Positions 10,332-64,000 of a stretch of 64,000 nucleotides of DNA are shown here, in pieces. The stretch is from NCBI GenBank assembly GCA_026770705.1, contig JANJGN010000034.1:11160001-11224000 (forward strand). Direction: 5' to 3'. This DNA comes from Isurus oxyrinchus. Taxonomy: Eukaryota. The notes under the pieces are model-generated. The model ran no database searches. It saw only the letters and a list, made by a program, of their open reading frames with translations, and was not told where the DNA came from. The first letter of the stretch is position 1. Each line of letters opens with the position of its first letter. The translations under genes were made by a program, and so were the position numbers.

Positions 10332-10499
10332 CTAAAATATTCAAAAATATCTTGTTGTACATTATTGGCCTACGGTACAATTTAGTTGCAAGATAGCTTA
10401 TTTCTGAATGTAAAAACACCTATGTCATTTAATAAATAGCAGTCTGAGTTATTCTATCATTTCCTCAAACTCAGGTCTTAATCTCATTAAAAATCCCGT

Positions 10500-11290: not shown

Positions 11291-11436
11291 CACTCACGTA
11301 AACATGGTGACTCTGGTTAATTGCATTATGAATTTCTAAACGCCCTGTTACAGCCCCCTTCACAATGAATTTTAGCGTTTTCCATCTGACTCAAACTAAG
11401 CTAATTGGCTGATTGTTAACTGATTTCTGTCCCCCT

Positions 11437-11795
11437 CATAGTGGTATTATCACTGGACTGGTATTCCAGACAGCTAGAGTAATGCTCTTGGGATCCAGGT
11501 TCAAATCCCATCGTGCCAGATGATGAAATTTGAGTTCAGTAAAAATCTGGGATGAAAATTCTGATGGAGACCATGAAACCATTGCCGATTGTCGTATAAA
11601 CACATTTGTTTAATCAATGACCTTTAGGGAAGGAGATCTGCTGCATTTACCTGGTCTACTCTGTGTGCGACTTTAGGCTCACAGCAATGTGCTTGACTCT
11701 TAAAAATAGCCTCTGAACAAGGGCAATTAGGGGATGGACAACAATGTTTACCTAGTCAGCGATACCCACAATTAATGAGCGAATTGAAAAAAAAA
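11437..11795 (+). mobile_element. tRNA-derived SINE (near full length)
   Basis: A/B-box-like head (tagtggt...ggttcaaatccc), conserved core (ggaaggagatctgc...acagcaatgtg) and tail caagggcaattagggg; homologous copies elsewhere in the window. Confidence 0.8.
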
Positions 11796-11804
11796 CACAG
11801 AGGG

Positions 11805-12021
11805 CATTTAAGAGTCAACCACGTAGGCCAGCAGCTTTCTTTCCCTAATGGGCATTAGTGAGCCAAACTAGATTTTACTATAACTGACAATGGTTTTATG
11901 GCCATCATTAATTCCAGGTTTTTTTATTGACTATAAATTTCACCATCTGCCATGGTGGGATTTGAGCCTAGGTTCCCATTAGCATGGGTCCCTGGTCCAG
12001 TGGCAATACCACTGTGCCACC
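11805..12021 (-). mobile_element. tRNA-derived SINE, same family, inverted relative to the adjacent copy
   Basis: Reverse complement of the head and core of 11437-11795. Confidence 0.75.
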
Positions 12022-12383
12022 ATCTTCCCTCTCCTTTTGCCCCTGAGCGAGATATAAATGGGCATCTGGGGCATGGGTTATTGGTGCGGGCTGCTGATAG
12101 GATAGGCTACGGATTCCTATCAGATTCTGAAAAGGGAACTGGACTTTCTCAATTGTTTATTTTAATTCACAAAATGTCATTTTTAAGATAATTTGGCAAG
12201 TGCAAGACGACTGAATTTTAAAATACGTGGCTCTGATTGCTGATTGGTCAATGATGGAAATACAATTAGACATAGTTTCAATATTGAACTGACAAATGGA
12301 GCTGGAATGTTGTGAAACTATTCTAATTGAGTTAGTGACTGAAATGTGACTCCAATATATTATTCAATAGATTAAACAAGTAC

Positions 12384-12671
12384 CCTCAGTGTGGAGCTGG
12401 TATTTGCTGATAGAATCATCGTATTTACTTGTTGCTTCACACGAAATCATGTTACCAGTTCCTGGTGGTAGGGACAGTCTCAGCGAGCTCTGCACCAGGG
12501 ACCTATTTACCGCCCAGGTGATGATTTCAACATCTGACATGATCCCAGGGAGGATTCCCCCATTGAGGCTCCATGTAATGTTTGCAGGTGGATTGGCTCT
12601 AATTCTGCAAGTACAATTAATCCAATATGCAGTGGTAGTGCAGATCGGGCCCACTATTATTCTAGGTTTAT
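12384..12671 (-). CDS. Siglec/MAG-like receptor exon 5 (membrane-proximal C2-set Ig, duplicate b)
   Basis: tttttag|AT...GAGG|gtactt; 288 nt, phase 1-1; KPRIIVGPIC...NCTCRIRANPPANITW...ISCEATSKY. Confidence 0.9.
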
Positions 12672-13288
12672 CTAAAAAGGGGGGGAAACAAAAGAAACTA
12701 TTATAATTAACAGTTGCAGTTGCTAATCTCCATTAATTTAGTTGTTGATAGAACCACGATACTTATGGTGGACTCTGAAAAAGAAACACATTTTAAAAAA
12801 CAAATAAAGCAGTCGACATAACACAAGTTCAACAGTATCTTATATATTTAAACAAATCAGGTTAACACTGAGCAAAAAAACACATTTAATTTCAGGAATG
12901 TTCATCACAATCAGACTTCTCCTGAGAGATGTCGTGGGAGATTGTTCAGATCAGAAGAAAGGCAACTGAAATTTATTTGCATAATGTTCCGAAAAATGTG
13001 TTTTAACTGCCAGTATTTGGGGGAAAAAGTCAAATAATTTCCCTAATTTTGCCCTTTTTAGAATCTTCCTTTGGGATGGACTGACTTGTTTCTACTTAGG
13101 TTCAGCTAACAAGGCGACAGTTCAAACGGTGAAACCTCAAAATATTAACTTGTTAATTCAACAATGATACATATTTTGGATAGGCTTGAGTTAACTGAGG
13201 ACACCCAGCTCTGATTTGTAAGAAAAACAAATAGTGCTTGAGTAGCCGATTCGATTTTTTTTCACGAAGTAACAGAAGATGCTGATAA

Positions 13289-13343
13289 GGGGGCGGTGGG
13301 GGGGGGGGGGGGGGGGGGGGGGGGGCGGGGGGGGGGGCGGTGG
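13289..13343. repeat. Poly-G tract
   Basis: Near-pure G run. Confidence 0.9.
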
Positions 13344-13369
13344 TATTTGAGGGGAGGTGACAGCAATAG

Positions 13370-13780
13370 GTGTTTCCTATATGGCCTCTAAGGAAGAGTT
13401 TGATAAAGTACCACATAAAAGTCTGGTTACCTAAATTAAAGCGTATGGAATAGGAAGGTTTGTCAGCTTGGTTAAAAAAAATGGGCTTAAAGAAAGGAAA
13501 CACCCAGTCTTGGTGAATGGTTGTTTTTAAGACTACCGGGTGGTTGACATTGGTGCTCCCCAATGGTCATCGCTCAAACTACTGATTTTCTGATATTTAT
13601 AACTCATAGTATTCTGCAATACAGAATAAAATTTCAAAATGTTCTCATCGTAGCCAACGTGGTGGACAGCGGCAAAGAGTCAAATTGTATGCTGCTACGC
13701 ATAGATTACCATCATGGGCAGCCATTTTTCAGATGGCATTGAATGCAGGGAAATGTGAGGTTACGCATTTTATCAGAAGG
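13370..13780 (+). mobile_element. CR1-type LINE RT fragment (decayed)
   Basis: tttgataaagtaccacat (FDKVPH) and downstream RT-like remnants, disrupted by stops and frameshifts. Confidence 0.65.
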
Positions 13781-14227
13781 GATAGAGAGAGGTAAGATCG
13801 ACTCTAAGCTATAATCTAGGCAGATAATTGATATTTAGTATCGATAAATGCGAGGATAATCTACTCAGATGGGACTGAACGAAATAGAAATCTAGACAAG
13901 CCGGGCAGACTGCAGGTGCTATCAGATTGTGACAGGGAATCTGACTAATAAAAGTGTTTATTTTAATTCAGAAACAAACATTTCCAATGTCATTGCCTGT
14001 AATATCTGTTCCTATAACTTTTCTTTTAATATATGCAGCAAGCTTCAGGAAGTGCTAGTGACTTTGTTCATTGGTATCGGTCATTGATAGAAAGTGCACC
14101 GAATAGTAACTAAAGGTAGATTCAGTATTGAGCTGTTGAACGCAGCTGGCATTTGCTGACACTATTATGATTGAGTTAGTGACGGAGCTATGACTCCATT
14201 ATAATATTCAACAGATTAAGCATGTAC

Positions 14228-14515
14228 CCTCAGTATGGAGCTCGTATTTGCTGACAGAATTGCCGTGTTTATTTGCGGCTTTACATGAAATCAGATTTCC
14301 AGTTCCCGTTGGTAGGCCCAGTCTCAGCGAGCTCTGCACCAGAGACTTATTCACCGCCCGGGAGATAATTTCCACATCTGAACTGATCCCAGGGAGGATG
14401 CTCCCATTGAGGCCCCATGAAATGTTTGCAGGTGGATTGGCTCTGACCCTGCAGGTGCAAATCGTCCAATTTGCAGACGTGTTGCAGATTGGGCCCACTG
14501 TTATTCTGGGTTTAT
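14228..14515 (-). CDS. Siglec/MAG-like receptor exon 4 (C2-set Ig, duplicate a)
   Basis: tcttttag|AT...GAGG|gtacat; 288 nt, phase 1-1; KPRITVGPIC...ICTCRVRANPPANISW...ISCKAANKHG. Confidence 0.9.
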
Positions 14516-15169
14516 CTAAAAGAAATACAGAAATGGTTATGTTTAAGAGTTGTTGCTATAAAGAATGAATTTGTGTTCTTAAGTAAATGCAATGGATTTG
14601 GTATATTTTTTTCCAAATTAAGAAATATTACCAGTTATATATATCACCCGTTTAATAGTGTGTTATATTTTTTCTTACTTTTTTTGCTTATTTTTTCCTG
14701 AGGGGCAAGTTTACATTTAATCTAACGAATGTTCATGCCAAACATACTTGTCTTGAGAGATGCACTGGGAGATTCCTCAAACGGAGCAAATGCAGAATGA
14801 TAATTATCTTTCATGTTGCCAAAATGTGTTTCCACCGTCAGAGTTTGGAGAAAACATCAACTTATTTCAAAGTATTCCCCAGTACTCCCCTTTAAAACAT
14901 ATCCCTTGGTTGAGGGCTGCCGTGTTTCTTCAGATGTTCAGCTAACGAGACAACTGGACAATGATACGTGAACAAGACTGCGCAGACATGCATCGAATGG
15001 AATTGGATAAGAAGGACTGAGAGGTGATGGATTTTGGGAATATAAATTAAATGGCACCGCTCTAAAGAGAATACAGGGACGTGGAGCTGCAAATGAACAG
15101 ACCCTTAAAAGTGACATTTTGAGAGGGTAGATGGCAAAGCTTATGGGATCTTCAGTGTCATAAACAGGG

Positions 15170-15730
15170 ATAATTATTACAAACACTGGGAAGTTATGCT
15201 GGATCCCTATGCGGCTCCAGTTAGGCCACAGTAAGAAGATTGGGTCCAGCTCCAGTTGTCACACTTTATGAAGGATGTAAGTATCTTGGAGAGGGTGCAG
15301 AGGAATTTTACCAGAATGGCTGCAGCGATTGGGGATTTTCGTTGCAATGTTAGGTCGCATAAGCTGGTGTCGTTCTACATTAGGCAAAGCTGGTGAAGAT
15401 TTGATAGGGATGTACCAAGGTTATGGCAGGAAGCAAAGAAAATATGTTCCCATGAGCTAATGATGGGACAAAGAGCAGGAGACATGATTTAAGATTTTTG
15501 TCAGGTGATACGGCAGGATTATGAGGAAGAGATCATTTGTGTACCGAATGTTATCGAGCTGGACCTCCATATATACAAAATGGACGAAGTGAAAGCAATG
15601 AATGATTCCAAAAGGAAATTGAGTGGATTCTTGTAGGAGATAAATGTGCTGGGTTGCCAGGATGGAGCAACGGGATGGTTATATTTGGATTCCCTTACAG
15701 AAAGATAGCATGGACTCGATTGGTTGAACG
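15170..15730 (+). mobile_element. CR1-type LINE, decayed 3' fragment
   Basis: ttggagagggtgcagaggaattttaccagaatg (LERVQR.FTRM) and a CR1-like 3' UTR. Confidence 0.7.
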
Positions 15731-16216
15731 CCATCTTTCTACAGCATGAGTGATGTATAACTGATGTATGACATGCCAGTAGGAGGGCTGCCATTACCAA
15801 TCCGAGGGTTTTGGAGGATATATGCTCCTCAAAATGCGAAATTTTCATTCTGTGGAAAGGAAAAATAATTCCCTCAGATTACCAGCATTACCTGTGAACA
15901 ATCGGATGCAGAATAATGTTTGCAGCAAGTGTGATTGTGGGCCAAACTCATAAAGATACCATCCGGTGAATTAATGCCACAGTGAGCCATATTCCAATCC
16001 TGCCAACCTGAGCCGGATCGCTAGGTTAATTTCTACTATTCAATCCATCGAGGCTATGCCTAGCCCTGCCTCCACAAAAAGGCCCCGGAATTCCCTCTAT
16101 CACAGCCTCATTCAATTTGCAGCCTTCCAGCAAGGGTGCAAGGGAAAGTTGGAATTTAACGCAGAGTTCGTGATATGAACGACAAATATCAATTTGAGAA
16201 GATCATACACACTTAC

Positions 16217-16474
16217 ATTGCACAGAAATCTGCGTGGAACTGTTTACGGTGCCCAGGTTATATTCAGCCACACACCAATATTCACCATCATCTTCAGAAG
16301 TCATGTTGTGAAACATCTGCTTCAATTCACCAGTCAAAGAGCTGTTGATTTCTTCACCATTTTTCACCCATCTTAAACTGATGGGCGGTGCTCCCCTGAC
16401 GGTGCAGTATAATAATGAGGAGTTGCCTTCCACCACCACGACTGAGGAATTGACTGTTGGTTTTATCAATCCAC
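16217..16474 (-). CDS. Siglec/MAG-like receptor exon 3 (C2/I-set Ig)
   Basis: gctttag|GT...CAAT|gtaagt; 258 nt, phase 1-1; VNSSVVVVEGNSSLLYC...LRWVKNG...DDGEYWCVAE. Confidence 0.9.
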
Positions 16475-17125
16475 CTAAAGCAGACATAAATGCCAAACAT
16501 CAATGATGAGTCACCATGATTCGCCTCCCAGATAAATCATTATGTTGGGTTCAGTACTCCTGTCTAATTTGGGAACCGTCGAATTTAAATGTCTGAAACA
16601 ACAAGAAGAATGTATTTTCCTCCAGCATTTTCCCCTCTTCTCATTTTGGCTGCTTGCTGGTGCAAAATGTGAGCATTCCTCGCTCTTTCAGGCCAGTTCT
16701 GAAGTCCAACCAGCGGTGACATCTGACTTCATTGAAGAGAGGAGCTGTTGATGATGTTTCGCTGTCCTCATTTTAATAATACACTTAATACTGACTAAAC
16801 TCAGAGCATCACTGGAACCCCCTAGAATCACAAACACCAAACACGTGGAGTCCAAAACATTGATAAGTGAACTGGACAGTTACATATGATTCGGAACATT
16901 CCTCAAACGGAGGATAAACAACATCACGAGTGGTCAGTTTTACTAGAGTAATTTCCATATGGCACTCCCTTTAGTGTAGGAACAATTGCGTTCAATATCA
17001 TTAACTCTCGAACCTATGTTTCAACTATCCTGAATACTCAGCCAAAAAATGGCAACATTTGCCCACTTGAGCCTTGGTTTACTCACTGGTATGACAGTGT
17101 ATAAATGAACAAAATAACTACTTAC

Positions 17126-17491
17126 TTAAAACGGAAAAGCGGACTTCAGAACTCTCAGTGCGAAATTTAGAAAAAGGCCACTTGGAGGTGATTTTCGCGA
17201 TGAATTGATATGTCCCCTCATCACTCATTCTAATGTCCTTCATCAGGAGGGAGCATTGCCCTCTTTGAAGGTTTCCACTGAGTTCAACTCTCCCACGAAA
17301 GTTATTGTGCTGCCTGTCTGGATTTTTCGAATCATAGATAGTGAAATCATCGAGGTTACCAGGAACAGAGTTCCCCCGTATCCACTTTCCCTCTAATTGG
17401 CTGCTGTACTCAATAATATCAATCCTGCACGGGAGCACTGCAGTTGAACCCACCGTGGCCGACACATTTTCAGGCATCACGCTACGAATGA
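17126..17491 (-). CDS. Siglec/MAG-like receptor exon 2 (V-set Ig, Siglec-type B-E cysteine pattern)
   Basis: tctctctcag|TC...TTAA|gtaagt; 366 nt, phase 1-1; VLPC...W...FRGRVELSGNLQRGQCSLLMKDIRMSDEGTYQF. Confidence 0.9.
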
Positions 17492-17861
17492 CTGAGAGAG
17501 AAAAAAAAACTAACATTATATATCCTAATGTGAGGTTATCTATTCAAAGTCCATTGCATCATCTTTAATACCAATTAAAACTTTTGCTGATTGACAAATA
17601 CTCGCCCATTAGGATCCCAATTTACATACCATTTAATGTGTTTTCAGATCAAGTGAAGTACTAATCAAATGCCAATCACAACTTTTAAAATGATTATTGG
17701 AACATCTGTTTGATTGCTGGTAATGAAGTTCGCAGAAATATATTCAGTCCTCAGCTAAAAGCGTACACGTGTTCCCTAAGCAGCAAATGAATCGTAAATG
17801 ACAACATTTATGAAATATACATTCAAATACAAATAATTGAGATGAACATTAAATAGCTATT

Positions 17862-17991: not shown

Positions 17992-18134
17992 AGCTATTGT
18001 TTGTCACTCAAAATACTTAATAAACATGAGTCAGCATTCCGTAACAGTGCATTGAAATACTCGTCAAATGTAATTTGAGAAGTCCCACGTTTAAATATTA
18101 AATGGATAGGCAGCAAAAGACGATAAGGAAAAAG

Positions 18135-20310
18135 AACGAAGGAAAGTACAGCACAGGAACAGACCCTTTGTTCCTCCGAGCCTGCGCGTATCATATACCC
18201 GGTCAACTAAAACATTTTGCACTTCCCGGGTCCGTATCCCTCTATTCCCATCCTATTCATGTATTTGTCAAGCTGCCTCTTAAACACCACTATCGTACTT
18301 GCTCCCACCAGCTCCTCTGGCAGCGAATTCCAGACATTCACCACCCTCTGCATAAAAAACTTGCCCCGCACATCTCCTCTATATATTTCTCCTCTAAACT
18401 TAAATCTATGTACCCTAGTAATTGACTCTTCCACCCTGGGAAAAAAACTACTCTGTCCATGCCACTCATAATTTTGTAAACTTCTATCAAGTCGCCCCTC
18501 AATCTCCGTCGCTCTAGTGAGAACAATCTGAGTTTCCTCAACCTCTCCTCATAGCTAATAACCTCCAGACCAGGCAGCATCCTGGAAAACCTCCTCTGCA
18601 CCGTCTTCAACGCCTCCATATCCTCCTGGTAATGTGGCGACTAGAATTGCACGCAATATTACAAATGTGGCCTAACCAATGTTTTAAAAACTGCAGCATG
18701 ACTTCCCAGCTTTTCTACTCAATACGCCTGCCAATGAAGGCAAGCATGCCATGTGCCTTCCTGACTACCTTATCCACCTGCGTTGCCACTTTCAGTGACC
18801 TGTGGACCTCTACACCCAGATCCCTCAGCCCATCAATGCATTTAAGGGTTCTGCCATTTACTGTATAATTCCTGCCTGTATTAGACCTTCCAAAATGCAT
18901 TAACTAGCATTTGTCTGGATTAAACTCCATCTGCCATTTCTCCGCCGAAGTCTCCAACCAATCTATATCCCGATGTATCCTTTGACAATCCTCTTCACTA
19001 TCTGAAACTCCTCCAACTTTAATGTCGTCTGCAAACTTACTAATTAGCCCAGTTACATTTTCCTCCAAATCATTTATGTATAGTACAAACAGCAAAAGTC
19101 CCTGTACTGATCCCTGCGGCACTCCGCTAGTCAAAGTTCTCCATTCAGAAAGGCACTCTTCCACTGCTACCCTCTGTCTTCTATGACCAAGCCAATTCTG
19201 TATCCATCATGCCAGCTCACATCTGCTCCCATGCAACTTTACCTTCTTTACTAGTCTGCCATGAGGGACCTTGTCAAAGGCCTTACTGAAATCCATTTAT
19301 ATAACATCCACTGCCCTTCCATCATCGATCATCTTTGTCACTTCCTCGAAAAACTTGATCAAATTAGTGAGACACGACCACCCCTTAACAAAACCATGCT
19401 GCCTCTCACTAATACACCCATTTGCTTCCAAATGATAGTAAATCCTGTCACGAAGAATCTTCTCCAATAATTTCCCTACCACTGACGTAAGGCCCATCGG
19501 CCTGTAATTTCCTGGATTATCCCTGCTACCCTTCTTAAACAATGGAACAACATTGGCCATTCTCCAGTCCTCCGGGACCTCACCCGTAGCCACTGAGGAT
19601 GCAAAGATTTCTGTCAAGGCCTCAGCAATCTCCTCCCTTGACTCCCTCAGTATTCTGGAGTAGATCCCATCTGGCCCTGGGGTCTTATCCACCATAATAT
19701 TCTTCAAAACACCTAACACCTCTTTTTTGATTTCAACATGATCCAGGCTATGTGCACACTCTTCCCTAGACAAATCGACCACTAAGTCCTTCTCTTTGGT
19801 GAACACTGATGAGAAGTATTCATTTAGTTTCTCTCCCATTTCTTCTGGCTTCACACACAAATTCCCACCTCTGTCCCTGAATGGGCCTACCCTTTCCCGG
19901 GCTACCCTGTTGCTTTTTACATATGTATAAAAGGCCTTCGGATTTTCCTTAATCCTGGTTGCCAGTGACTTTTCATGACTCCTTTTAGCCCTCCTGACTC
20001 CTTGCTTAAGTTTCTTCCTACTTTCTTTGTATTCTCCATGGGCTTCATCTGTTCCCAGCCTTCTAGCCCTTACAAATGCTTCCCTTTTCTTTTTGACTAA
20101 TCTCAAAATATCCTTCTTAATCCAAGGTTCCTGAAACTTGCCATGCTTATCTTTCATCCTAACAGGAACATGCTAGTCCTGAATTCTTATCAATTGACGT
20201 TGAAAGCCCCCCACATGTCAGTTGTTGATTTGCCCTCAAACATCCTCCTCCAGTCTAGATTCCTCGGTTCCAGCCTAATATTGTTATAATTAGTCTTCAC
20301 CCAATTAAGC
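18135..20310 (-). mobile_element. CR1-type LINE, ~2.2 kb 5'-truncated, frameshifted ORF2 (RT)
   Basis: ORFs 19297-20157, 18904-19164, 18715-18900, 18338-18619 and 18207-18434 with PGNYRP, GVPQGS, KFADD and RVVNVWNSLP motifs. Confidence 0.95.
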
Positions 20311-36280: not shown

Positions 36281-36484
36281 TTTGGTCCACCATTTTAATA
36301 TCAACTATAGTGTGAAATAATTACATTTCTATATATTACAATATAATATTAAATAATATTACAGTAGTGAAATAACATTAGTTTTGGGGTCAGGCAGGAG
36401 TTAAATCATCAGGGTGGCAAATGTACTCGACTATTTAAATAAGGAGGGAGAAAAGAAAAGCAAAGCATTACAGACACGTTAGCC

Positions 36485-39400
36485 TAACATCAGCAGTGGG
36501 GAAAATGTTGGAGTCTATTATAAAAGATGTGGTAAAAGAACACTTAGAACACATTAACGGGATTAAACAAAGTCAGGAAAGGTTTATGAGAGGGAAATCA
36601 AGCTTAACTAATCTACTGGAATTTTTTGAGGATGTACTTAGTAGAATTGATAAGGGAGAGCCAGTGGATATGGAGCATTTGGATTTCACGAAGGCTTATA
36701 CAAGGTCCCACATAAGAGGCTAGTGGGTAAACATTAAAGCACATGGGTAAAAACAACAGCTTCCGCTTCCTCTTCACCATGGACGTCCAATCCCTCTACA
36801 CCTCCATCCCCCACCAGGATGGTCTGAGGGCCCTTAGCTTCTTCCTCGAACAGAGGCCCGAACAATTCCCATCCACCACTACTCTCCTCCGTCTGGTTGA
36901 ACTTGTTCTCACGTTGAACAATTTCTCCTTCAACTCCTCTCACTTTCTCCAAATAAAAGGTGTGGCTATGGGTACCCGCATGGACCCCAGCTATGCCTGT
37001 CTCTTTATGGGGTATGTGGAACATTCCTTGTTGCAGTCCTACTCCGGACCCCTTCCACAACTTTTTCTCCGGTACATCGATGATTACTTCGGTGCTGCTT
37101 CATGCTCTCGTCGGGACTTGGAAAAATTTATTAATTTTGCTTCCAATCTCCACCCCTCCATCATTTTCACGTGGTCCATCTCTGACACTTCCCTTCCCTT
37201 CCTTGACCTCTCTGTCTCAATCTCTGGTGATAGACTGTCCACCAATATCCATTACAAACCCACCGACTCCCACAGCTACCTCGACTACAGCTCCTCACAC
37301 CCCGCTTCCTGTAAGGACTCCATCCCATTCTCCCAGTTCCTTCGCCTTCGTCGCATCTGTTCCGATGATGCTACCTTCAAAAACGGTTCCTCTGACATGT
37401 CCTCCTTCTTCCTTAACCGAGGTTTTCCACCCACGGTCGTTGACAGGGCCCTCAACCGTGTCCGGCCCATCTCCCGCACATCCGCCCTCACGCCTTCTCC
37501 TCCCTCCCAGAAACATGATAGGGTCCCCCTTGTCCTCACTTATCACCCCACCAGCCTCCGCATTCAAAGGATCATCCTCCGCCATTTCCGCCAACTCCAG
37601 CATGATGCCACCACCAAACACATCTTCCCTTCACCCCCCTTATCGGCATTCCGTAGGGATCGCTCCCTCTGGGACCCTGGTCCACTCCTCCATCACCCCC
37701 TACTCCTCAACCCCCTCCTATGGCACCACCCCATGCCCACGCAAAAGATGTAACACCTGCCCCTTCACTTCCTCTCTCCTCACCGTCCAAGGGCCCAAAC
37801 ATTCCTTTCAAGTAAAGCAGCATTTCACTTGCATTTCCCCCAACTTAGTCTACTGCATTCGTTGCTCCCAATGTGGTCTCCTCTACATTGGAGAGACCAA
37901 ACGTAAACTGGGCGACCGCTTTGCAGAACACCTGCGTTCTGTCCGCAAGAATGACCCAAACCTCCCTGTCGCTTGCCATTTTAACACTCCACCCTGCTCT
38001 CTTGCCCACATGTCTGTCCTTGGCTTGCTGCATTGTTCCAGTGAAGCCCAACGCAAACTGGACGAACAACACCTCATCTTCCAACTAGGCACCTTACAGC
38101 CTTCCGATCTGAATATTGAGTTCAACAACTTTAGGTCGTGAGCTCCCTCCCCCATCCCCACCCCCTTTCTGTTTCCCCCTTTTTCCTTTTTTTTCCCTAT
38201 AAATTATATAGATTTTTCTTTTCCCACCTATTTCCATTATTTTTAAACATTTTAAAATCTTTTATGCTCCCCCCACCCCCACTTGAGCTGTACCTTGAGT
38301 GCCCTACCATCCATTCTTAATTAGCACATTCGTTTAGATAATATCACCAACTTTAACTTTAACACCTATGTGTTCTTTTGTACCATTGTCGCTGACATCT
38401 TTTGATGATCTGCTTCTATCACTGCTTGTTTGTCTACACAACCACCTCTCTCTCTCTCTATCTCTCTGCCCCCCACACACACACCTTAAACCACCTTATA
38501 TTTCAACTCTTTCTTGGACTCGAAATCAAGTTCTGTCGAAGGGTCATGAGGACTCGAAACGTCAACTCTTTTCTTCTCCGCCGATGCTGCCAGACCTGCT
38601 GAGTTTTTCCAGGTAATTCTGTTTTTGTATTGTTATTAAAGCACATGGGATTGGGGTAATATGCTTGCATGGACTGAGAATTGGTTGACAGACCAGAAAC
38701 AGGGAGTGGGAATAAGTGGGTCTCTTTTCAGGTGGCAGGTCGTGACTGGTGGTGTACCACAGGGTTTAGTGCTTGGGCCCCAGCTATTCATGACATTTTT
38801 AAATGACTTGGATGAGGGAACAAATGCAATATTCCCAAGATTGCTGATGACACAAAACTGGGCGAGATTGTGAGTAGTGAGAAGGATGCAAGGGAGCTTC
38901 AGGGTGATTTAGGCGAGCTGTGTGTGTGAGCAAACACATGGCAGTTGCAGCATAACATGGATGAATGTGAAGTTATACGCTTTGGTGTGAAGAACAGAAA
39001 GGCAGAGTAGTATTTCAATAGCGATGTATTGGAAAATGAGGGTGCACAAAGAGACCTGGGTGTCCTTGTACACCAGTAAATAGGCAGGTACAGCAAGCAA
39101 TTAGGAAGGCAAATGTAATGCTGGCCTTCATTGCAAAAGGCATTGAGTTCAGAAGTAGAGATATTTTACTGCAGTCATACAGGGCTTTGGTGAGACCACA
39201 CCTGGAGTATTGCGTGCAGCTTTGGTCTCCCTACACAGGAAAGGATATACTTGCTAGAGAGGGAGTGCATCAAATGTTCATGAGGCTAATACCACGGATG
39301 GCAGGATTGACGTATGAGGACAGATTTGTTTGACTGGGCCTGTATTCACCAGAGTTTAGAAGAATGAAAGGGGGTCTGATTGAAGAGTATAAAATTCTAG

Positions 39401-39760: not shown

Positions 39761-40904
39761 CAATTGCACTTAGACCTTGTGCTACCCTGATGCATCTGCA
39801 TTAGGTAATTTTAAAATAACATCTTAATATTTAATAAAACTCACAAAGACTTTCAGCTTCACTTTTGTTATTCTTTGAATGCACTCCTTGTTCAATATAC
39901 TGAGATTTACATTATAAAGCAAGAAAGATGTTTCCTTCTGAACAGAATGCTTTTAACCATCTGCGTCCTTTGGTTGTTAGGAGTTCCAAAGTAATTGAGT
40001 GCAAACGTCTGATCAATCTTTCATTTCCTTTCATCAGAGTGACTTGGTAGGTCATTTTAAAAGGCGGTTATGGCATTGCTGTGGGCCTGGAGTCACCTGT
40101 ATGCCAGACTAGGAAAAAGCCGCAGGCCTCCTTCCATAAAGTGAGCAAACAATCGATGAAAGTTATGATGAGCAGCACCACTAACTTAGAACTCCAGAAT
40201 TTACTCGTTGAATTCCACTTGCCAGTGTTAGCATATGAACCCATCTCCTGAGGCCTGGGTTAGTTTGACAGTGACGATACCACTATACCACCGTCTCCTT
40301 ATAAAGATCCTGAAGCCCTTTTGACATCAGTTAGTGGAGATGGGGTCCGGATGGTAATGGCAATGACACGGAGTAAAGAAGCTGGACAATAAACTGTGAA
40401 TGTAACAGAAGCAGAAACTGAGAAAATACGCTCAAAAAATGAGAATTTAAACAGAATGGAACATCCTCAAGCTCAACCTCCTGTCTCTCAGCATTGAATC
40501 GGAAACACAGGGAGCAAAATATACGCAAGCTCTCACCTGCAATCACTTCTTGCTTCAGCTGTTGGGGGAGGGGGTGGCCATCTGAATGCCGGGTTCTTCC
40601 TCTCCAGTGACATGAACTCAATCTGCACTCCCCATTACTTTCCTGATTGAACAATCCTTTGGAGAAATGCGGCAACGCCTTCATCCTGACTGCTGCCCAT
40701 ATGTCGGTAAAGAAACATCTTTTGCAACGGAGGAAGCATCTGTGGAGCCTGAGATGTGAAAATCAAGAAGTTGCCAATCCCCAACGCATTTCAAGTTCCC
40801 TGCAAGTTGGGGAGCAGCTGTCCTGAGTTTTGGGTGTTATTATCACTCGTTCATAGATACCTGGAGGGAGACTTTGATTAGAAAGGTTTCATTGCATCTG
40901 TTTC

Positions 40905-40971
40905 ATGGCTGTGACTATGGCAGGAAGAAACATCGCTTTGATTGGCCTCTTGCTCCTGGTCCGTTTTTCAT
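40905..40971 (+). CDS. Single-Ig VSIG10-like receptor exon 1 (signal peptide)
   Basis: MAVTMAGRNIALIGLLLLVRFS, donor T|gtaaga, phase 1 (alternative ATG at 40917). Confidence 0.7.
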
Positions 40972-42765
40972 GTAAGAACATTCAGAATTTACCTGATCAT
41001 TTTTGCTGATGTGAATTTCTATGCTTGTAGCTCAGACTATGACAGGCTGTTAACTGATCTTCCTGCAGTTCGGTCAGTGAGGCAGCAATCACTTGTTTAG
41101 CTGGCGATTATCTCTATAGTTGGCAGGGACCTCTGTATTGCCTCGAATTGAATACTTAACCACTGCTCACAAGCAACCAGCAAACTCATACGTTACTGGG
41201 CCACAGCAAGCAAAACTATTGCCCATAAGGAATCTGAAATTAAAATATAAAACACTGGAAATGGTCCAGCCTGTCAGGCTTAACACGTGGAGGGAGAAGC
41301 AGCATTAATCTTTCAGACCGATGAGCTTTGTTCAGAGCTGGAATGTATTACTGGTCTGACGATTTGAAGCTAATAGGGAGACAGTGAAAAGGGAAAAGTG
41401 GGAAAGGTTAAAAATAAATTTCTGTGATAGGATGGAAGGAGGAAGATGATAAAAGGCAAAAGGCTTGATGGTGCCAGCCGAAAAGGGTTGGCCATGGGAG
41501 ATGTGAAGATGCAAAGGTGCGTCAGAAATTGTTATGGGAGGTCTGTTATTTTGGCCCATTTTACCAAATTCGGAATAACTTCAAAAAGTGGGGGTTAGCG
41601 ATTTTAAGATGAAGATTCCTCCTTAAGGGTCTCCATTTGAGCTCTAAACACCTGATACCCCCTGAAATAGAACCCCCCAGTGAACTTGTCTGGGAGACAT
41701 TCATTATTTCAGTAGAACAATATTTGTGGGAGAACTTAAAGTTGTTCAGCAGGGGTTGCCTTACCTAACGTTTTAACCAATTGAATTGGGTAATGATCAG
41801 AGGACTGATCAGAATATTTTAATGTTAGTTTTGGAAGGCTCACGAGTTAAATGTTGTCACTATGGGTAAGACCAGCTTCTCTTTTCTTTTATACAGCATT
41901 TATTTCAGGAAACCCCACCAGGGAAACAGCACTTCCCAATTATTTGCGGCTCCCTAGCGGAACTTCAGTGTATAACTGGTAATTGATGGTTCTCTATTGC
42001 ACATTCCCATCGCCTCTGCTGCACAAGGGGCAGAATTGTATGGATGGCCCAGTTTGCTCCCAACGTCATTTCCACTCACTGCAATCGCCACTCATTCAAT
42101 GAGGTTTTAATTATTGTTAAAGACTTTTAAATGTTTATTTTATCATTCTCTCTCCCTCAACCCCATCTTTCTTTCTTAAGTAATTCGCGTCTGTATATGT
42201 TTTCATGCTAAATTACGTTTTCGCATTAACAATGAAGAGTTCATGTCATTTGGGTTAACAATTCGATTCGGGTGCTGTTGTACAAGGGGCAGGATTGCAT
42301 CGGGGGCCCATTTGGCTCTTCACCTCATATTCATTTCCACTTACTGCAAGGAACTCAATATTAGGTGTTACATGGAAGTGGTGGCCGCTCTGATGCCACT
42401 CCGCTCGAGGGCAATTTTTGGCCCTGGGTCCGATAGTAAGGGTTCTTCATTGTGATTGACCGAGAAGATGCACGATTTCTTTCCTCTGTCCAAGCGAGTC
42501 CCAATTTTTGAAAGAGAGCGCTGTTCCATGTTTGTGGATTTCCACTAATGCCCAAGTCACAGAGCAGAAACTCTCATAGAGTCTGTGGTCATTTATAAAT
42601 ATAATGAACATAAGGTTTGTGGTCACTTCCAAACGAAATGAACATAAAAACAGTGGTCACTTGTATGTGTAATGAACCTGCTTGCACATTCCACTCACTA
42701 CTGACTACAAACTCCTGGCCAAGTAATGAACTTAAAGCCACATAACATGTGTCTCTTTATTTCAG

Positions 42766-43032
42766 CATGCAGTCCAGCCAAACGGAAAACATATTTATCA
42801 TGTCTATCCGCCCGTGATGGGGATTTCGTTATCTTGGATTGCTACTATCGGGGTGGTCTCCCATTTCCTACTCTCACCTGGACTGGGCCTAACAATCTAT
42901 ACAGGGAAACGACCAACACTCCACGTTTCACTATAAACCTCACAAAGGACGAGTTTGTGGATGAATGGAATACCATTTACAAGTGCATAGCCGGCCATCG
43001 CTATTTGAGTAGCTACTGCTATGTTGGACGGG
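42766..43032 (+). CDS. Single-Ig VSIG10-like receptor exon 2 (Ig domain)
   Basis: tttatttcag|CA...CGGG|gtgagt; 267 nt, phase 1-1; LSC...VILDCYYRGGLPFPTLTW...YKCIAGH...YC. Confidence 0.82.
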
Positions 43033-43902
43033 GTGAGTGCAAGGGCCTGCAGCCTTACACAAAGATGGAATGGTTCCACTTTCAGCTGCATTTTTCCCAG
43101 CTGGTGGGAAACATTCAGAATTAGGGGGCCAGAGTAGAGAACGTGGAATCATAGAATGGTCAAAGCACAGAAATACCCATTTGAACCATCTTGTCTGTGC
43201 TGGTTCTCTGCAAGAGCAACTCATCTAAACCTCAGTCCCAGCCTTCCCCAGTGGCTTAATCTGACTGACTGAATTTTATACCTTCCTATATCCTGATTGT
43301 TAGAGCAACGTGTCCTGTTGTTTGTTAAACTAGTTCATCACAAGAAGAGGCTCAGCTGACACTGTTTACACATCCTCCCAGTCTTCACTGACCTACGTTG
43401 CCTTCGGGTCGTGCAATACTTCGACTTTAACTTATTCTTCCTGACCTATGATCCTGGATGACCCTAGTCCTCCCTACCTAAGCGCCCTCCCCCATCCCGT
43501 GAACCCTTAAAGATTCCCCTGTCCATCCATTACTGGCTTCCTGCACAGTTCTGATCATTTTGGCCCCAGCATTTATGGCTGTGCCTTCAAGTGGTTATGG
43601 AACAAATTCAACATTGACATCACGAAACCTGGCACTTCTCCATCTGCCCCTATAGCTCAAGAATCTGCTTCCAACCTGCCTCTTCAACGATGATTTTACT
43701 CATCAGAGTGTCAGTTTGTGTCGGACATGACTCCTCTGAAGCACCCTGTGAAGTTTTCCTGATTAAAGGTGCTCTATAAATGCAATGTTTATCTGTTTCT
43801 TGCACATTCAGAGAAAAGGATGAATGTTTTATTTTCCATCGAAGTTGACGGCTAATATTGGTCTGATGATGACCGTGTTCCTATTATTATATCGCTTTGC
43901 AG

Positions 43903-43998
43903 GATATGGAAGTTATTTTGGAATAGCCTTCGGAGTTCTGGCACTACTGATTGTTCTGTGCATCCTTCTAATATATATTTGCACAAAATGCGATCAAC
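43903..43998 (+). CDS. Single-Ig VSIG10-like receptor exon 3 (transmembrane)
   Basis: ctttgcag|GA...CAAC|gtaagt; YGSYFGIAFGVLALLIVLCILLIYICTKCDQ. Confidence 0.85.
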
Positions 43999-44269
43999 GT
44001 AAGTTCCTAACCTTAACTGCTTTTCAGTTTTAATGTTATTTGTTAACATTCTTTTTATTAATGTTCTTAGGTTATTGTTGCTATTTTAATTAGTATATTC
44101 TTTTGAAGCTCAATTTTTTTCAATCGAATTTATTTCTAGCCTCTTAGTGATCTATTGTTACTTCCTGATACACCTACATATATACCTATATTCACACAGA
44201 GTGCCCTGCCTTCTGCAGGCAACTGTAACATATACACACATTGCACCTTTCCAACTCCACAAAATATGT

Positions 44270-44490
44270 ACAGAACATTCTGAAAAAAACTCAGCAGGAC
44301 TGACAGCATATGTGGAGAGAGGACCAGAGTTAACACTTCGAGCCCGAGTGACTCTTCTTCAAAGCTCTGACGAAGGGTCATATGGACTCTGTTTTTCACT
44401 CCACAAATGCTGTGAGACCTGCTGAGTATTTCCAGCGTTTTCTGTTTTTATTTCAGATCTCCAGCATCTGCTGTATTTTGCCTTTATCAA
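44270..44490. mobile_element. Palindromic PLE-terminus element with two back-to-back hammerhead remnants
   Basis: Minus-oriented tail plus motif joined at gctctga to plus-oriented CTGACGAAGGGTCATATGGACTC plus tail. Confidence 0.7.
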
Positions 44491-44504
44491 CAAAATAGGT
44501 GACA

Positions 44505-44680
44505 GCCATTCACTGAAACATTCCCACAGGCAATGTCTTGACCAATCAGAGTCAAGCTGCCTCTTTTGAGCTCAAACAAAGCTTGGAAGTTAATTGTAAT
44601 TTGTCAGTTCATTGGTGCATTCTCCACAACATTGCCTCTACCATTCAGAGTTCTCTTGCCAACAAATCAGCACTCTCTTC
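44505..44680 (+). repeat. Unclassified CCAAT-containing interspersed repeat (inverted copy at ~58620-58795)
   Basis: ttgaccaatcagagtcaagctgc matches the reverse complement of gcagcttaactctgattggtcaa, with extended flanking similarity. Confidence 0.6.
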
Positions 44681-45446
44681 TCAAGCGGTATAAATTGTTC
44701 CATTTACAATTTGGTGTTCTTGCAAAATGTCCTGACGCGTACATGACAAAAAGCATTGACAGAATATTCGCCTTTCCAGCAACACTTAGGTTCTGCACTA
44801 CCAAATGACTATTAATATATTTTTGCTGCGCTTTTGCAATTGAATCCTTGCTGGACCATTTCAGAGGGCATTTACATCTCCGTGTGTCAAGAGACACATG
44901 CCACATTCACATGAAACATTGCTTACCTAAAGGGCATTAATGAACCAGTTAGTTTTTTGCAACTGTCCAGTAATTTCACTTTCACCACTAGTACTACATG
45001 TATTTTTCACTCCTGCTTTACTTTATGAAGTGATTTTAAGTTCCCAGCTGCCAGTGGTGGGATAAATGAACTCATGTTGCTGGATCATTAGCAGAGGCCC
45101 TCTGATGAGTCCTGCAGTGATATCACAATTATAATACCGTACCGCATCAAAAATTCAAGCTGTTGCTTTGCTGGGGAATATTTGTTCTTCCATGTCTTTA
45201 GTGAATATGTTGATTTGGATGAATTGTGTAATTTGGCTTTAACTGATAAACATGGGAAAAGTTCTAAAGTGATTTATGCTTCGATTGTAAATGTGAAAGA
45301 GATGGAAATTTACCTCATTAGTAGCTACCTTCCTATCCCAGAGTTGGGCTGGTCAGTGCTTGTGTGCAACTTTACAGAAGTATACGGTATGTCGAGAACA
45401 GAGGGGGAACCCTACTCACCCAGTTTATCTCCTTTACTTTTAAAAG

Positions 45447-45571
45447 TTTGTGAAAAGATTGCAAGACATCGAGGTAAATGTAGCACATCTCCTGCTGCCA
45501 CGACTGCTACAGGCTATGAGAACCCAACTTATGCCGGTGAACCCGCCGAGGAAGGGAAGACACCAGAATGA
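45447..45571 (+). CDS. Single-Ig VSIG10-like receptor exon 4 (cytoplasmic tail with GYENPTY)
   Basis: Pyrimidine tract ctcctttacttttaaaag|TT, phase 1; CEKIARHRGKCSTSPAATTATGYENPTYAGEPAEEGKTPE*; four exons total 555 nt = 184 aa + stop. Confidence 0.75.
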
Positions 45572-47399
45572 AATGAAAAAAAAAACACAGGTTTCCTAAC
45601 CTCAGAATTGAAGTGAATCACCAAGCAGCATTAGAGCAACGGCCTATTAATCCTAGTATTGCCGCTACTGGAAAAAAATACAGAAGGGAACATTCCGAAT
45701 GATTGAGGGGATGGAGGGACTTGGTTAATGAGGAGCAATTGTGCAAGGTGGGTCGATTCTCAGTGGAACAGATAAGTGTGGGGTGGGGGTGGAGGGGGGA
45801 GGTGTGTGTGTTTAGGAATTTAGATTTTCGGTTTGCTATGGAATGAACACATATAACCCCCGACAAGCTCTCCCACGTCATCCAGAGCAGCAGAGCCTGT
45901 GGCCACGTGCTGGAAAAAGTTCATTTCAAACCTTTTTTTGCAGAAGCAATACTTCAGTGAGTGTGTGATCAGTGAAAGGATCAAGCTCCCCAGAGAGACA
46001 CTGTAAGCGTGTAGTACTGGTTAATTCAAATGAAAATTAAACAGATAGAAAATGACCTTTTGGAAAAGAGCATGTGGATCATTTGAGGTATGATATCTGG
46101 AAATGCAGCATAGCTTGGTAACATTGGGTCTTTGTTTACTGAAGCTCTTAAACACAAAGGTTTCGCTGCACTGGTTAATGTGTTCTGCTGTGGAACAATT
46201 GACTGTGATAGTTAGTTAACAACCCCAGCATTTTTGTTTCAGGACGATAGTAGATGCATGACATGGATCTAGGTCTTTTTTCTCTAGCATTTCCAAAGTT
46301 CCTATCGTCATTGGCAGGGAGGCAGGCAGCTCAGCAAGCGGGCCATTGTAGGCCATGTCGCCACTAGGCACCATTCCATAATTGGACTAAAACTAAGAAA
46401 ATTCAACTCTTCGAGAGGCTTCCAATTTCATGTTTCAAATTTTCCAAAAGTACAGCCTTGTCAATATTGGTTGGTGATTCACTTTGAGATGGAGATATTA
46501 TGCTTCATGTGATTTCCTTTTTGTTTTTAGTCTTTGGTTCTTTCCTGCATCAGATTTAAATTTATCCCTTGAGTTAACTAATGCTGCAATCGGGCCTCAT
46601 TTGGAGGGCAGAAAAATGCATTTATTACATTGAACTTGTGATTCTATTTATCAGCCTTGCTGTTCATGATGAAATATCTAATTAGCTTGTTTATATTGTT
46701 CCATAGATTAACATCCAGTCATGTAGCAATGACTTCCTGAAGTATGGGTTCAGAAGCTGCAATCTGCTTGCTTGCAGCTATCAGCTTCTCGGGCTCTGGC
46801 TGCTGAAAGCTTCCGCCCAAGCACCCCTCCACACACCGCTCCCCCCTCCCCTTTCCCCCTCCCCGTATCCTCCCTGAAATTCAAAGAGCAAAGTCACAGT
46901 GGCTCCAATATTGGTATCACTGAGCACCTCTTTCCTTTGACTCCCAATTCACGTATTTCCTCGGCTTCTGTGCTTTATTGATGAACACCAACATGTGGAA
47001 GGTAATAGCAGAGTTAGGATGAATGATCCGGAGTGCTGTGGCACTGATTTCACAACTGTAACTCTCTATGCAAATAGTCTGCACCATTTCTTACTGAACA
47101 GTTTGCATCTAAGTATTCTACAGAACCATTGTGTTGTTTAGTTGGGAGTGTTTTAGACCCTACTGCAAACCTTTGAGTTTGTAATCAAAATAAAAATCAT
47201 CTTTGGACCATTGATGCATGTTTGTGACTGTTAATTTACAGAAGTGATCAATACTTAAAAATCCTTCTCTTACCAAACTCTCAGAGATAAGCGCTCTATT
47301 CTTTTGCACTTAAATTCTATCTCTCTTTGCTTAACGACATATGTGATACCTCTCGACAAAAGTATAATCCAATGATGAAGAAAGACTCTATGAGAAGGG

Positions 47400-60185: not shown

Positions 60186-61144
60186 GCTAATGAAACTGAA
60201 TGGTTTTTTTTGAACAATGAAGGGTATAAAAGGGGATGATGTTACAGAGCTTCGTGGCACTCCCAGTTTCTTGGTTTTCGCTGCTTCAGCACAGTTCTCT
60301 GTTCTTTCTACTCCGATCTTATGGCCCCATCACTATTCTGAACACTTGCCCTGTTCCACAGTCTTTGTCCCTGTGCTCTAACCGACTGCAATCTCCACAC
60401 TGAACCCTATCCCCCATCGCACCGGTGTCATCAGAGGCGTGCCCCACTCCCATCAGCAGTTCCATCCCTCACATCCCTCCTTGTCCACTCCCAGGGCCTT
60501 TCACTTATACGCCCCCTCGCTCCTATCATGATTCCCCTCCCCCACTCCTATCACCTGCTTCCTCCCCAATACCAGTCACCATTGCATCCCCCACTCCCAG
60601 GTCACTCCCCCACTGCTACCACCCGTCCACTCCCCAATGCTATCACCTGTTTCCTCTCTCCACCCCATAACCATTTCCATTCCCAGTCCGATTACCTGTC
60701 CTTTCGCCACTCCGATCCTTCGAGCTTCCTGCCAGCAGGAAACCGATGGAAAACTGCTGAAAACAGGGAAGAATCCTGATTCAAGATGGAGACTCAATCT
60801 AGAGGGCGCATGTGTCGCAACAACATCGGTTGCAGAGAATTGGATTGGCGTGGTTCAGGGAGATGTTTAGGCCCGGCCCACAGCCAGCTCCGTGCACTCA
60901 CAGTGACCAGTTCATAAACAAGCTTCCTCCCATTAAAGGGAGTTCGTCTTGTCAACTCAGCCAAGTACACTCAGCCCAAGCTCAGGGAGACTGCTAATGT
61001 AATCAGACTGCATCGACAAATTTTCCAGGGCTGAGATTGACAAGCTCATTGATACACAAGCTCCTAGCCGCATCCACATGCATTGATGTCAATACGTATT
61101 CGAGGTCCTCGGGCTCACGCGGTGAGAAATGACAGGCCACTTAC

Positions 61145-61462
61145 CAAGGACATGCAGAGTGATGGTTGCTGTTGTTTCTCCGCCCACATCTGGAGTCAGG
61201 CTAACAGTGTAGTCTCCACTGTCCGAAACTGCCACTGACTGCAGCAGGAGTGATCCATTAGGGAGGACTATGTTGGCCCGCCATCTGTAGTCATCATTTC
61301 TATCAACAGTTGTAGCAATCCACCAGGCGATCATCTTTCCTGCGAAGTTCCAGCTCCCGCTCTTCACCCGGGCTGAAGGATTCACTAAGAATAGAGCATT
61401 TCCTCCGACGGTCACATTAATCCATTTGTTTTCTATTAGGAGAGTAAAATCCCTGGGCTCAG
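61145..61462 (-). CDS. CEACAM-like cysteine-free V-type Ig exon (V1)
   Basis: tttcctcag|CT...CTTG|gtaagt; 318 nt, phase 1-1; INVTVGGNALF...W...YRWRA...PNGSLLLQSVAVSDSGDYTV. Confidence 0.85.
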
Positions 61463-61794
61463 CTGAGGAAAGAAACCCACACTGAGAAAAGTGGTCAAAC
61501 TCGACACAATACATACTTTCCTGAAGTAACAACGACGTAATCTCCTCATCTTTCTCTGACAAACTCTTGCTTTCTTACTTGTCCAGTCACTGAAGAAAAT
61601 GAAACGAGAAAGAGGTCCTCAACCACAGATGTCTATGAAGAAGCAGCCACCGAGGTAAGCGCCAGTCTCCCATCCCAAGAAAACCGCGCCACCTCCCCAC
61701 CTCTCTCTGTGTTCAATACGCTACAAAAAACCTCCATCTTCGTCCAAGGTTTAGTCACGTGACCTAATATGCTCGGGGTCAAATTTTCTTCAAT

Positions 61795-63155: not shown

Positions 63156-63637
63156 GATTCAAGATGCCGATTTCATTCAGAATCAGATGTGGCAGCAACA
63201 TCGGGTGCACAGATCTGGGTGGATGAGGCCCAGGCCGATGTTTATTCTCGGCTTCCGAGCTCCCACAGCGAACATTTCGTGAGCAACCCTCATCCCATCA
63301 AACCAATTTTCTCATCAGTGCAGCCAACTGTGTCCTTCGTATCTGACGTCATCACAACGTGCCATAAACATTCACACGTTGCTCCAATGACGCCACCAGA
63401 CAAACACGCACCGCGCCTTCTGCCATCACCGCGCATACATTCAAGCACAACCCACATCCCATAAGAGGTCTGTCCTGTCAATGGAGCTAAGTATACTCCG
63501 CGCATACCCCGGCTATCACCAACGTCATGAGGGTGCGCTGGCACGTTTCCCCATGCCTGGATTGATGACCTCATGCATAAACGCCATCTAGCATCTTGAC
63601 GTCCCCTCGCAAGCGCAGACCGAAAAATGTCACTTAC

Positions 63638-63955
63638 CGAGTACCTGTAGAGTGAACTGTGCTGTAGTTGAAAAACCCACATATGATTCCATTCTAACGG
63701 AGTAGTTTCCACTGTCCAAAGGTGTCACTGACTGCAGTAGGAGTGATCCGCTAGGGAGCAATAACTTAATCCTACCTTTGTAATTAGAATCTGCATCTAA
63801 TACTGGACCGATCCACTGAACTATATCTTTCATCCCGAATTGCCACTTCCCAACTATTGCCTCAACTGGCGGCTGCACTGAAAATAATGCGTTTCCTCCG
63901 ACGGTCACGTTAATATGGCTGTTTCCTGTCAGGGTACTGAAATCCTGGGGCTCAG
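63638..63955 (-). CDS. CEACAM-like cysteine-free V-type Ig exon (V2)
   Basis: tttccacag|CT...CTCG|gtaagt; 318 nt, phase 1-1; INVTVGGNALF...YKGRIKLLLPSGSLLLQSVTPLDSGNYSV. Confidence 0.85.
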
Positions 63956-64000
63956 CTGTGGAAAGAAAAAGCAGACTGTGAAAAGTGGCGAAACTCGACA

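Follow-up and report, generated by a model that had tools for sequence, protein, structure and literature searches.

A small, spliced immunoglobulin-superfamily gene of elasmobranchs with a predicted NPxY-type signal in its tail

A 64,000-nucleotide stretch of the Isurus oxyrinchus genome (assembly GCA_026770705.1, contig JANJGN010000034.1, positions 11,160,001 to 11,224,000 of the forward strand; hereafter the window, in whose numbering coordinates are given) raises the question of whether four short exons at 40905-45571 form a genuine gene and, if they do, what is meant by the heptad GYENPTY, a sorting and adaptor-binding motif of the APP family, in the tail of the predicted protein. A first-pass annotation, made from the sequence alone, had proposed a miniature receptor with a single immunoglobulin (Ig) domain and had interpreted it as a convergent endocytic or signalling receptor, possibly a substrate of gamma-secretase. 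Our analyses confirmed the observation and partly supported that interpretation. The gene is real, is spliced as predicted and is transcribed. We assign a probability of roughly 55% to the reading that it is functional and encodes a type I membrane glycoprotein of 184 residues (aa), a member of the Ig superfamily found so far in elasmobranchs only, whose tail serves sorting through an NPx[Y/F] signal.

Assembly and translation of the exons reproduced the predicted model in full. Four phase-compatible exons (40905-40971, 42766-43032, 43903-43998 and 45447-45571) with a coding sequence (CDS) of 555 nt give 184 aa; the coordinates and translation were correct, and the positions of the G-SYF-G-IAF-G and GYENPTY motifs were verified. 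The exon borders are all GT..AG, the acceptors have polypyrimidine tracts and the introns are all in phase 1. Transcripts were sought in four public runs aligned to 40500-46400, three of which (X1-X3) represent one sample of an organism designated A and the fourth (X4) a related organism, B. The library type of these runs was only guessed to be RNA, yet their contigs have the introns removed. The features of the gene, with the ratio of non-synonymous to synonymous substitution rates (dN/dS) where it contributed, are:

40809-40904, plus strand: 5' untranslated region (UTR), minimum extent (at least 96 nt, no upstream ATG; a contig of run X1 covers 40809-40971)
40905-40971, plus strand: exon 1, start codon and hydrophobic signal peptide, residues 1-22, ending in phase 1 (transcript joint 40971>42766)
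42766-43032, plus strand: exon 2, one modelled C2/I-type Ig domain (alignment, model, dN/dS 0.16-0.20), with canonical Cys48 (42840-42842), Trp61 and Cys96 (42984-42986), extra invariant Cys35 and Cys107, N-glycan site N80 (42936-42944) and zipper glycine G110 (43026-43028)
43903-43998, plus strand: exon 3, stalk of about 6 residues, transmembrane helix and first juxtamembrane cysteines (hydropathy, two transcript joints)
43908-43934, plus strand: G114-SYF-G118-IAF-G122, making with G110 four glycines invariant in six species
45447-45571, plus strand: exon 4, cytoplasmic tail residues 144-184 and stop codon TGA at 45569-45571 (transcript joints)
45512-45532, plus strand: GYENPTY, with the conserved core [F/Y/H]xNPx[Y/F]
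45560-45568, plus strand: C-terminal T-P-E, the T and P invariant in sharks and ray, the final residue E in 5/6
45572-46400, plus strand: 3' UTR, unbroken from the CDS (X4 record 23, X1 records 3 and 7; contigs extend about 380-430 nt past 46400)
44243-44833, strand unassigned: high-copy interspersed repeat in intron 3, outside the mRNA (contig depth in thousands, many loose or diverging flanks)

All the predicted joints were present in the contigs: 40971>42766 in X1, X3 and X4, 43032>43903 in X1, X2 and X4, and 43998>45447 in X1, X2 and X3, with X4 showing the same last junction with a synonymous TTC for TTT. The exon 3-exon 4 junction was thus found in spliced contigs with the last exon and the frame that had been predicted, and not with the different last exon or frame that had been named as a refutation. 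Exon 1 contains a second ATG at 40917, which is the start position used by the orthologues. A tblastn search found no second copy of the gene within the window, and an Rfam scan of 40.5-47.5 kb, including the intron-3 repeat, gave zero matches.

An additional joint, 40971>43903, skips the Ig exon; this form was abundant and was seen only in the organism A sample. The frame is kept across the joint, the junction codon is T|GA, and the transcript terminates after 22 codons. In the window, Chiloscyllium and Rhincodon, joining exon 1 to exon 3 creates a TGA codon; in a ray, Narcine, it would create CGA. A protein isoform lacking the Ig domain, considered as a product of this joint, was ruled out by the TGA junction codon in the three sharks checked. 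We read the exon-2-skipped transcript as a non-productive splice form, and the skipping may represent regulated unproductive splicing.

Relatives of the protein were sought by a word-indexed protein search and by an exhaustive profile search of 1.84 billion representatives. The word-indexed search identified orthologues in Cetorhinus maximus (184 aa, 85% identity), Scyliorhinus torazame (181 aa, 67%), Chiloscyllium punctatum (180 aa, 66%) and Rhincodon typus (183 aa, 60%), whose public names are only "uncharacterized" or "hypothetical". The Cetorhinus orthologue (P0001) and alignments of the public orthologues were used for the exhaustive search, the folding and a complex test. The exhaustive search added a 390-aa model from Narcine bancroftii (electric ray), of which the last 181 residues are the orthologue, and two divergent relatives, P0010 (83 aa, from a gene neighbouring the Chiloscyllium orthologue) and P0009 (94 aa, from the transcript contig L004). 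The four-exon, phase-1 structure is common to the window, Chiloscyllium, Rhincodon and Narcine, and the open reading frame (ORF) is intact in six species.

Vertebrates outside the elasmobranchs gave zero matches at E<=1e-3 among the 1.84 billion representatives, and no bony-vertebrate protein was returned either by this search or by a five-species profile, which was aimed at more distant proteins and recovered known orthologues only. The last 181 residues of the Narcine model, used as a query for relatives of VSIG10 length, returned only that model. So far, the family appears to be confined to elasmobranchs among annotated proteins. Public annotation leaves the gene unnamed, and a lineage-restricted member of the Ig superfamily is what is added here.

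Selection was estimated by the Nei-Gojobori method, with the window compared with two orectolobiform sharks (Chiloscyllium and Rhincodon). The dN/dS was 0.28 for the whole CDS and 0.16-0.20 for the Ig exon. For the transmembrane exon it was 0.13 between the window and Chiloscyllium, the Rhincodon pair being saturated at synonymous sites, and 0.21-0.26 against the ray, comparisons with which were mostly saturated at these sites. For the tail exon the value was about 1.0. These ratios point to purifying selection on the Ig and membrane exons and to a tail that varies freely save for short islands.

The conserved residues of the ectodomain are those of an Ig domain. C48, W61 and Y94-K-C96 are invariant and align with the Cys, Trp and Cys of 24 invertebrate nephrin- or hemicentin-like repeats, and the AlphaFold model obtained from that alignment was a seven-strand sandwich (predicted local distance difference test, pLDDT, 85; predicted template modelling score, pTM, 0.75). 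A first whole-protein AlphaFold model, based on four sequences, was poor (pLDDT 53) and was not used for the fold search. Every match found in the fold search was an Ig domain. Among Swiss-Prot models the top three were zebrafish VSIG10 residues 223-310 (domain 3) and human and mouse VSIG10L2 residues 335-409, with template modelling (TM) scores of 0.71-0.73, identity of 22-24% and E about 3e-3, barely ahead of basigin. In a shape search of the ESM Atlas the highest TM score, 0.75, belonged to a VSIG10 cluster, and the neighbours among solved structures were basigin entries 3i85, 3b5h and 5x0t at TM scores of 0.56-0.67. A sequence search of the PDB returned VHH matches at chance level only, and the look-alikes proposed by a language model were generic type I Ig proteins (KSHV K1, basigin and TMIGD1).

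Together, these data indicated that the ectodomain is confidently modelled as a divergent C2/I-type Ig fold. Cysteines 35, 48, 96 and 107 and the N-glycan site N80 are invariant in six species, and we infer that the extra pair, Cys35/Cys107, forms a second disulfide. The domain had been described at first pass as VSIG10-like, which agrees with its nearest named structural neighbours, but the likeness is weak and neither the exhaustive profile search nor the word-indexed search gave a significant sequence match to VSIG10, VSIG10L or VSIG10L2. The term is therefore kept as the best available label for the type of domain and not as demonstrated kinship.

Beyond the last Ig strand, a stalk of about 6 residues leads to a helix with a Kyte-Doolittle peak of 3.2 at residues 119-137. 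The residues K140, K147, R150, R152 and K154 follow the helix, and their basic character fits a cytoplasmic tail. The GxxxGxxxG motif that had been noted in the membrane region was borne out and proved to be one turn longer, as G110, G114, G118 and G122 lie in i+4 register at the outer membrane boundary and are invariant in the six species. The juxtamembrane region had also been described as cysteine-rich. The window protein has five membrane or juxtamembrane cysteines, of which C131 is invariant (6/6) and C145 is kept in the five sharks (the ray aligns Ala there and has its Cys three residues earlier), but the remainder vary. When residues 105-160 of the Cetorhinus orthologue were modelled as two copies, the score was 0.02, which is evidence neither way.

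Within the tail, three islands are conserved: C-E-K-x-A beside the membrane, a signal of the NPxY type, and T-P(-E) at the C terminus. In the window and Cetorhinus the signal is spelled GYENPTY; it is SYDNPTY in Rhincodon, SYDNPTF in Chiloscyllium, GHYNPAY in Scyliorhinus and GFNNPTF in Narcine. N-P followed by an aromatic residue at position 0 is present in 6/6 orthologues, with F or Y at position -5 in five of the six. In a 41-aa tail of the same composition, NPx[YF] would be expected by chance at about 1/100 and [FYH]xNPx[YF] at about 8/10,000, and with expectations this low the occurrence of [FYH]xNPx[YF] in all six orthologues exceeds chance. The motif tyrosine is replaced by phenylalanine in two species, which makes signalling dependent on tyrosine phosphorylation unlikely and argues for readers of the motif that need no phosphotyrosine. 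Phosphotyrosine-binding (PTB) domains fall into classes (PMC4985636, PMC3938774); a subfamily binds unphosphorylated NPxY, and the PTB domain of X11 binds an APP peptide containing GYENPTY (PMC4985636).

Of the heptad that had been assigned to the APP family, the NPx[Y/F] core is conserved in 6/6, which is what an endocytic or PTB-adaptor signal would lead one to expect, but the full spelling is complete in only 2/6 orthologues, those of the window and Cetorhinus. Likewise, when conservation of the motif and dN/dS were checked as had been suggested, the core and the gene as a whole were found to be conserved, but the heptad was not, and the tail evolved at a ratio of about 1. The exact heptad probably arose in the lamniform lineage from an ancestral [GS][YF][DEN]NPT[YF]. 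The Pfam APP_amyloid match covered 7 residues only (E 0.51), consistent with the earlier view that the likeness to APP is convergence and not homology. Based on the alignments, the tail is predicted to carry a sorting or adaptor signal of the LDLR/APP NPxY type, with the APP spelling acquired by convergence, not kinship. It had also been stated that no Ig receptor with this combination of features was known. TrkA and MuSK are Ig-domain receptors with NPxY, and the statement was too broad, being fair only for a protein this small. A literature search found no paper linking GYENPTY with the Ig superfamily, and none on the gene itself.

The two divergent relatives differ in their tails from the orthologues. 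P0010 (chiPu_0011376, L002:10001-21864) and the Chiloscyllium orthologue are arranged head to head, about 33 kb apart. The Ig exon of P0010 is a decayed half-remnant containing a stop (L002:15937-16068), its helix has Glu in place of G118 and its tail is without NPxY; P0010 resembles a small adaptor chain, or is decaying. P0009 is an unplaced transcript of transmembrane segment and tail, which begins with the end of a retained intron 2 and continues into exons 3 and 4, spliced together. Its tail reads YDYPTF and the terminal TPE is missing. The NPxY-type signal thus appears to have been lost in divergent members, namely the neighbouring paralogue and the unplaced one, and to have been retained in the main orthologue line.

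Other observations on gene structure came from Rhincodon. The intron 3 donor (L001:15612-15613) is GA, not GT, in the whale-shark reference, and the NCBI isoform X3 uses this donor anyway. In the Rhincodon isoforms named X1 and X2, exons 1-2 are instead followed by a V-set exon (L001:32786-33139) located some 15 kb beyond the end of the gene, and we read these isoforms as read-through models.

The gene lies among other Ig-superfamily sequences. Upstream, a Siglec/CD22-like gene occupies about 8200-17543 on the minus strand, with a V-set exon at 17121-17543 (Pfam V-set 6.5e-13, Ig_CD22 2e-4). Its C2 exons are one at 16206-16499 and a near-duplicate pair at 14211-14555 and 12367-12732. Downstream, V-type exons at 61092-61574 and 63633-63998, also on the minus strand, are a similar pair without the canonical Cys pair, as in CEACAM N domains. 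In Cetorhinus, a convergent multi-Ig gene for 764 aa lies about 4.6 kb downstream of the orthologue, and both V-type exons of the window are probably part of this gene. With Siglec-like and CEACAM-like neighbours, the small gene can be regarded as a member of a cluster of Ig-superfamily receptors. A comparison of the close flanks between species yielded one weak V-exon match only. Retroelement ORFs lie between 18 and 40 kb, with reverse transcriptase-like sequences at 18100-20200 and 36400-38200, and take up much of the interval from the Siglec-like gene to the small gene, and the start of the window (3-5558) is a 5.5-kb satellite with a 23-bp unit, about 65% matches between copies and strong GC and AT skew.

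Based on the features of the protein, we propose that it is a small surface receptor whose abundance there is set through its tail. The single Ig domain, placed almost directly on the membrane, would be a recognition or adhesion module. Through the glycine zipper the helix would pack with another helix, from a second copy of the protein or from a partner, and the membrane-proximal cysteines may be palmitoylated. Sorting adaptors of the Dab-like PTB or FERM kind (of the Dab2, ARH or Numb type, of the SNX17 type, or possibly of the Fe65/X11 type) would recognise the NPx[Y/F] turn in its unphosphorylated state and would set clathrin-mediated uptake and recycling and thereby the surface level of the protein. 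If this proposal is correct, the identity of GYENPTY with the APP motif reflects convergence on adaptor preference. The conservation pattern is what the orthologues display, and from it we infer the adaptor step.

Several observations weigh against this reading. The Pfam Ig models all scored below threshold in every orthologue, the best being Ig_3 or ig with E of 0.013-0.06 and 14-16 bits against cut-offs of 21.8-30. The profile search of the Ig domain that had been proposed at first pass was therefore negative as far as Pfam is concerned, and it was the alignment and the model that recovered the fold. The signal peptide and the topology were assigned from hydropathy alone. In the tail, Scyliorhinus has His and not F or Y at position -5, the overall dN/dS of the exon is about 1, and NPxY is missing from both P0009 and P0010.

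One alternative is that the Ig domain and the helix alone are functional, the tail motifs being tolerated and the likeness to APP pure chance. A tail ratio of about 1, two divergent relatives without NPxY and a heptad complete in 2/6 orthologues are what this alternative would lead one to expect. However, sharks and ray alike keep N169-P170, the aromatic residue at +3 and the terminal T-P amid residues that change freely, and the chance expectation for the motif is low. We consider a merely tolerated tail possible but doubtful.

Rather unlikely, in our view, is that the protein acts as an accessory or signalling subunit, its zipper packing on the helix of a neighbouring Siglec- or CEACAM-like receptor to which it lends an NPxY sorting tail. 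In its favour are the very small size of the gene, its position between the Siglec/CD22-like gene (8.2-17.5 kb) and the CEACAM-N-like V exons (61-64 kb), the strong conservation of the zipper, and the Chiloscyllium paralogue, whose Ig exon is lost and whose helix has acquired a Glu, as in adaptor chains. Such a charged helix residue is, however, absent in the main orthologues. In addition, constraint is strongest on the Ig domain, which suggests that this domain itself binds a ligand, and species do not have their close flanks in common.

We regard as improbable the more ambitious proposal that an elasmobranch mini-Ig receptor converged independently on the APP/LDLR design, with the zipper helix governing intramembrane processing or obligate dimerisation and a YxNPxY tail that needs no phosphorylation recruiting adaptors of the Fe65, X11 or Dab type. 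If this were true, an APP-like signalling module would have originated independently on an Ig scaffold.

The idea of gamma-secretase cleavage, in which the ectodomain would be shed, the helix cut and the tail left to signal via Fe65/X11 adaptors as in APP, is disfavoured, and we think it very improbable. The predicted type I topology, the exact GYENPTY in the window and Cetorhinus, and a zipper at G110/114/118/122 that mirrors the i+4 glycine run of APP at membrane entry are all compatible with it. Against these stand a stalk of about 6 residues, which would leave scant room for a sheddase, and a mature ectodomain of about 93 aa, a length too great for direct entry into gamma-secretase. The Ig-less transcript, which would otherwise encode a ready stub, meets a TGA in the three sharks checked, and the heptad is not conserved outside the lamniforms. 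Moreover, single-pass helices very often contain GxxxG. In one split-luciferase study on APP, mutation of GxxxG altered amyloid-beta production and not dimerisation (PMC4588712).

Finally, that the exons are a chance assembly or a pseudogene, for which the lack of an above-threshold Pfam Ig match might be cited, is already refuted by the spliced transcripts, the ORF intact in six species and the purifying selection, and has next to no probability.

As a receptor sorted through its NPx[Y/F] signal, the protein would be among the smallest Ig-superfamily receptors bearing a conserved sorting signal. For comparative immunology, it adds one lineage-restricted member to a shark region in which Siglec-like and CEACAM-like immune genes abound. 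For cell biology, it offers a compact natural test case, in which a four-glycine helix is combined with an NPxY signal in about 160 mature residues. The exact match to the APP heptad is most readily taken to show how adaptor preferences drive short motifs to one spelling, and it raises no new question on APP or gamma-secretase.

Comparison with known systems places the likenesses at different levels. VSIG10 and VSIG10L2 provided the best, though weak, structural matches to the shark Ig domain in two libraries, the Swiss-Prot models and the Atlas. VSIG10 proteins are type I membrane proteins with C2 domains only, of which VSIG10 has four (PMC9520664). These are arranged in tandem in a protein of more than 500 aa, in contrast to the one Ig exon and 184 aa of the shark protein, and the transcript contigs, which join the signal-peptide exon straight to the sole Ig exon and this to the transmembrane exon, leave no place for a VSIG10-like tandem. 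The C2 domain of basigin (EMMPRIN, CD147) was the best neighbour among solved structures and basigin was also among the language-model look-alikes, but its identity to the shark domain is 10-14%, and it has two or three Ig domains, a Glu in its helix and no NPxY. The invertebrate nephrin- and hemicentin-like repeats were the sole significant sequence matches outside the elasmobranchs (E 1e-20 to 1e-4) and share with the shark domain the patterns G-G-x-P-x-x-T-L-T-W and Y-K-C; the proteins that contain them are long, multi-repeat adhesion proteins, and the likeness is only at the level of domain type. Human IGSF23, which we take to be a small single-C2 protein encoded in the CEACAM/PVR region at 19q13, is presumably similar in size, architecture and CEACAM-type neighbours, and is mentioned as an unconfirmed lead only.

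With the APP family, the shark protein shares features of the helix and tail. The heptad is identical in lamniform sharks, and the APP tail also has a T-P-E triplet. The i+4 glycine run at the membrane entry of APP (PMC4588712, PMC7961089) lies at the outer end of the helix, as it does in the shark protein. In contrast, E1, E2 and the other APP domains are missing from the shark protein, whose ectodomain is a single Ig domain. The FxNPxY signal of the LDL receptor is matched in the tails of the orthologues by N-P with an aromatic residue at 0 and, at -5, either His or an aromatic residue, and the tolerance of Phe for Tyr in FxNPxY is as expected for phosphorylation-independent adaptors of the Dab2 and ARH type. 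The ectodomain of the LDL receptor is unrelated to that of the shark protein, and the likeness between the two is one of motif, not of family.

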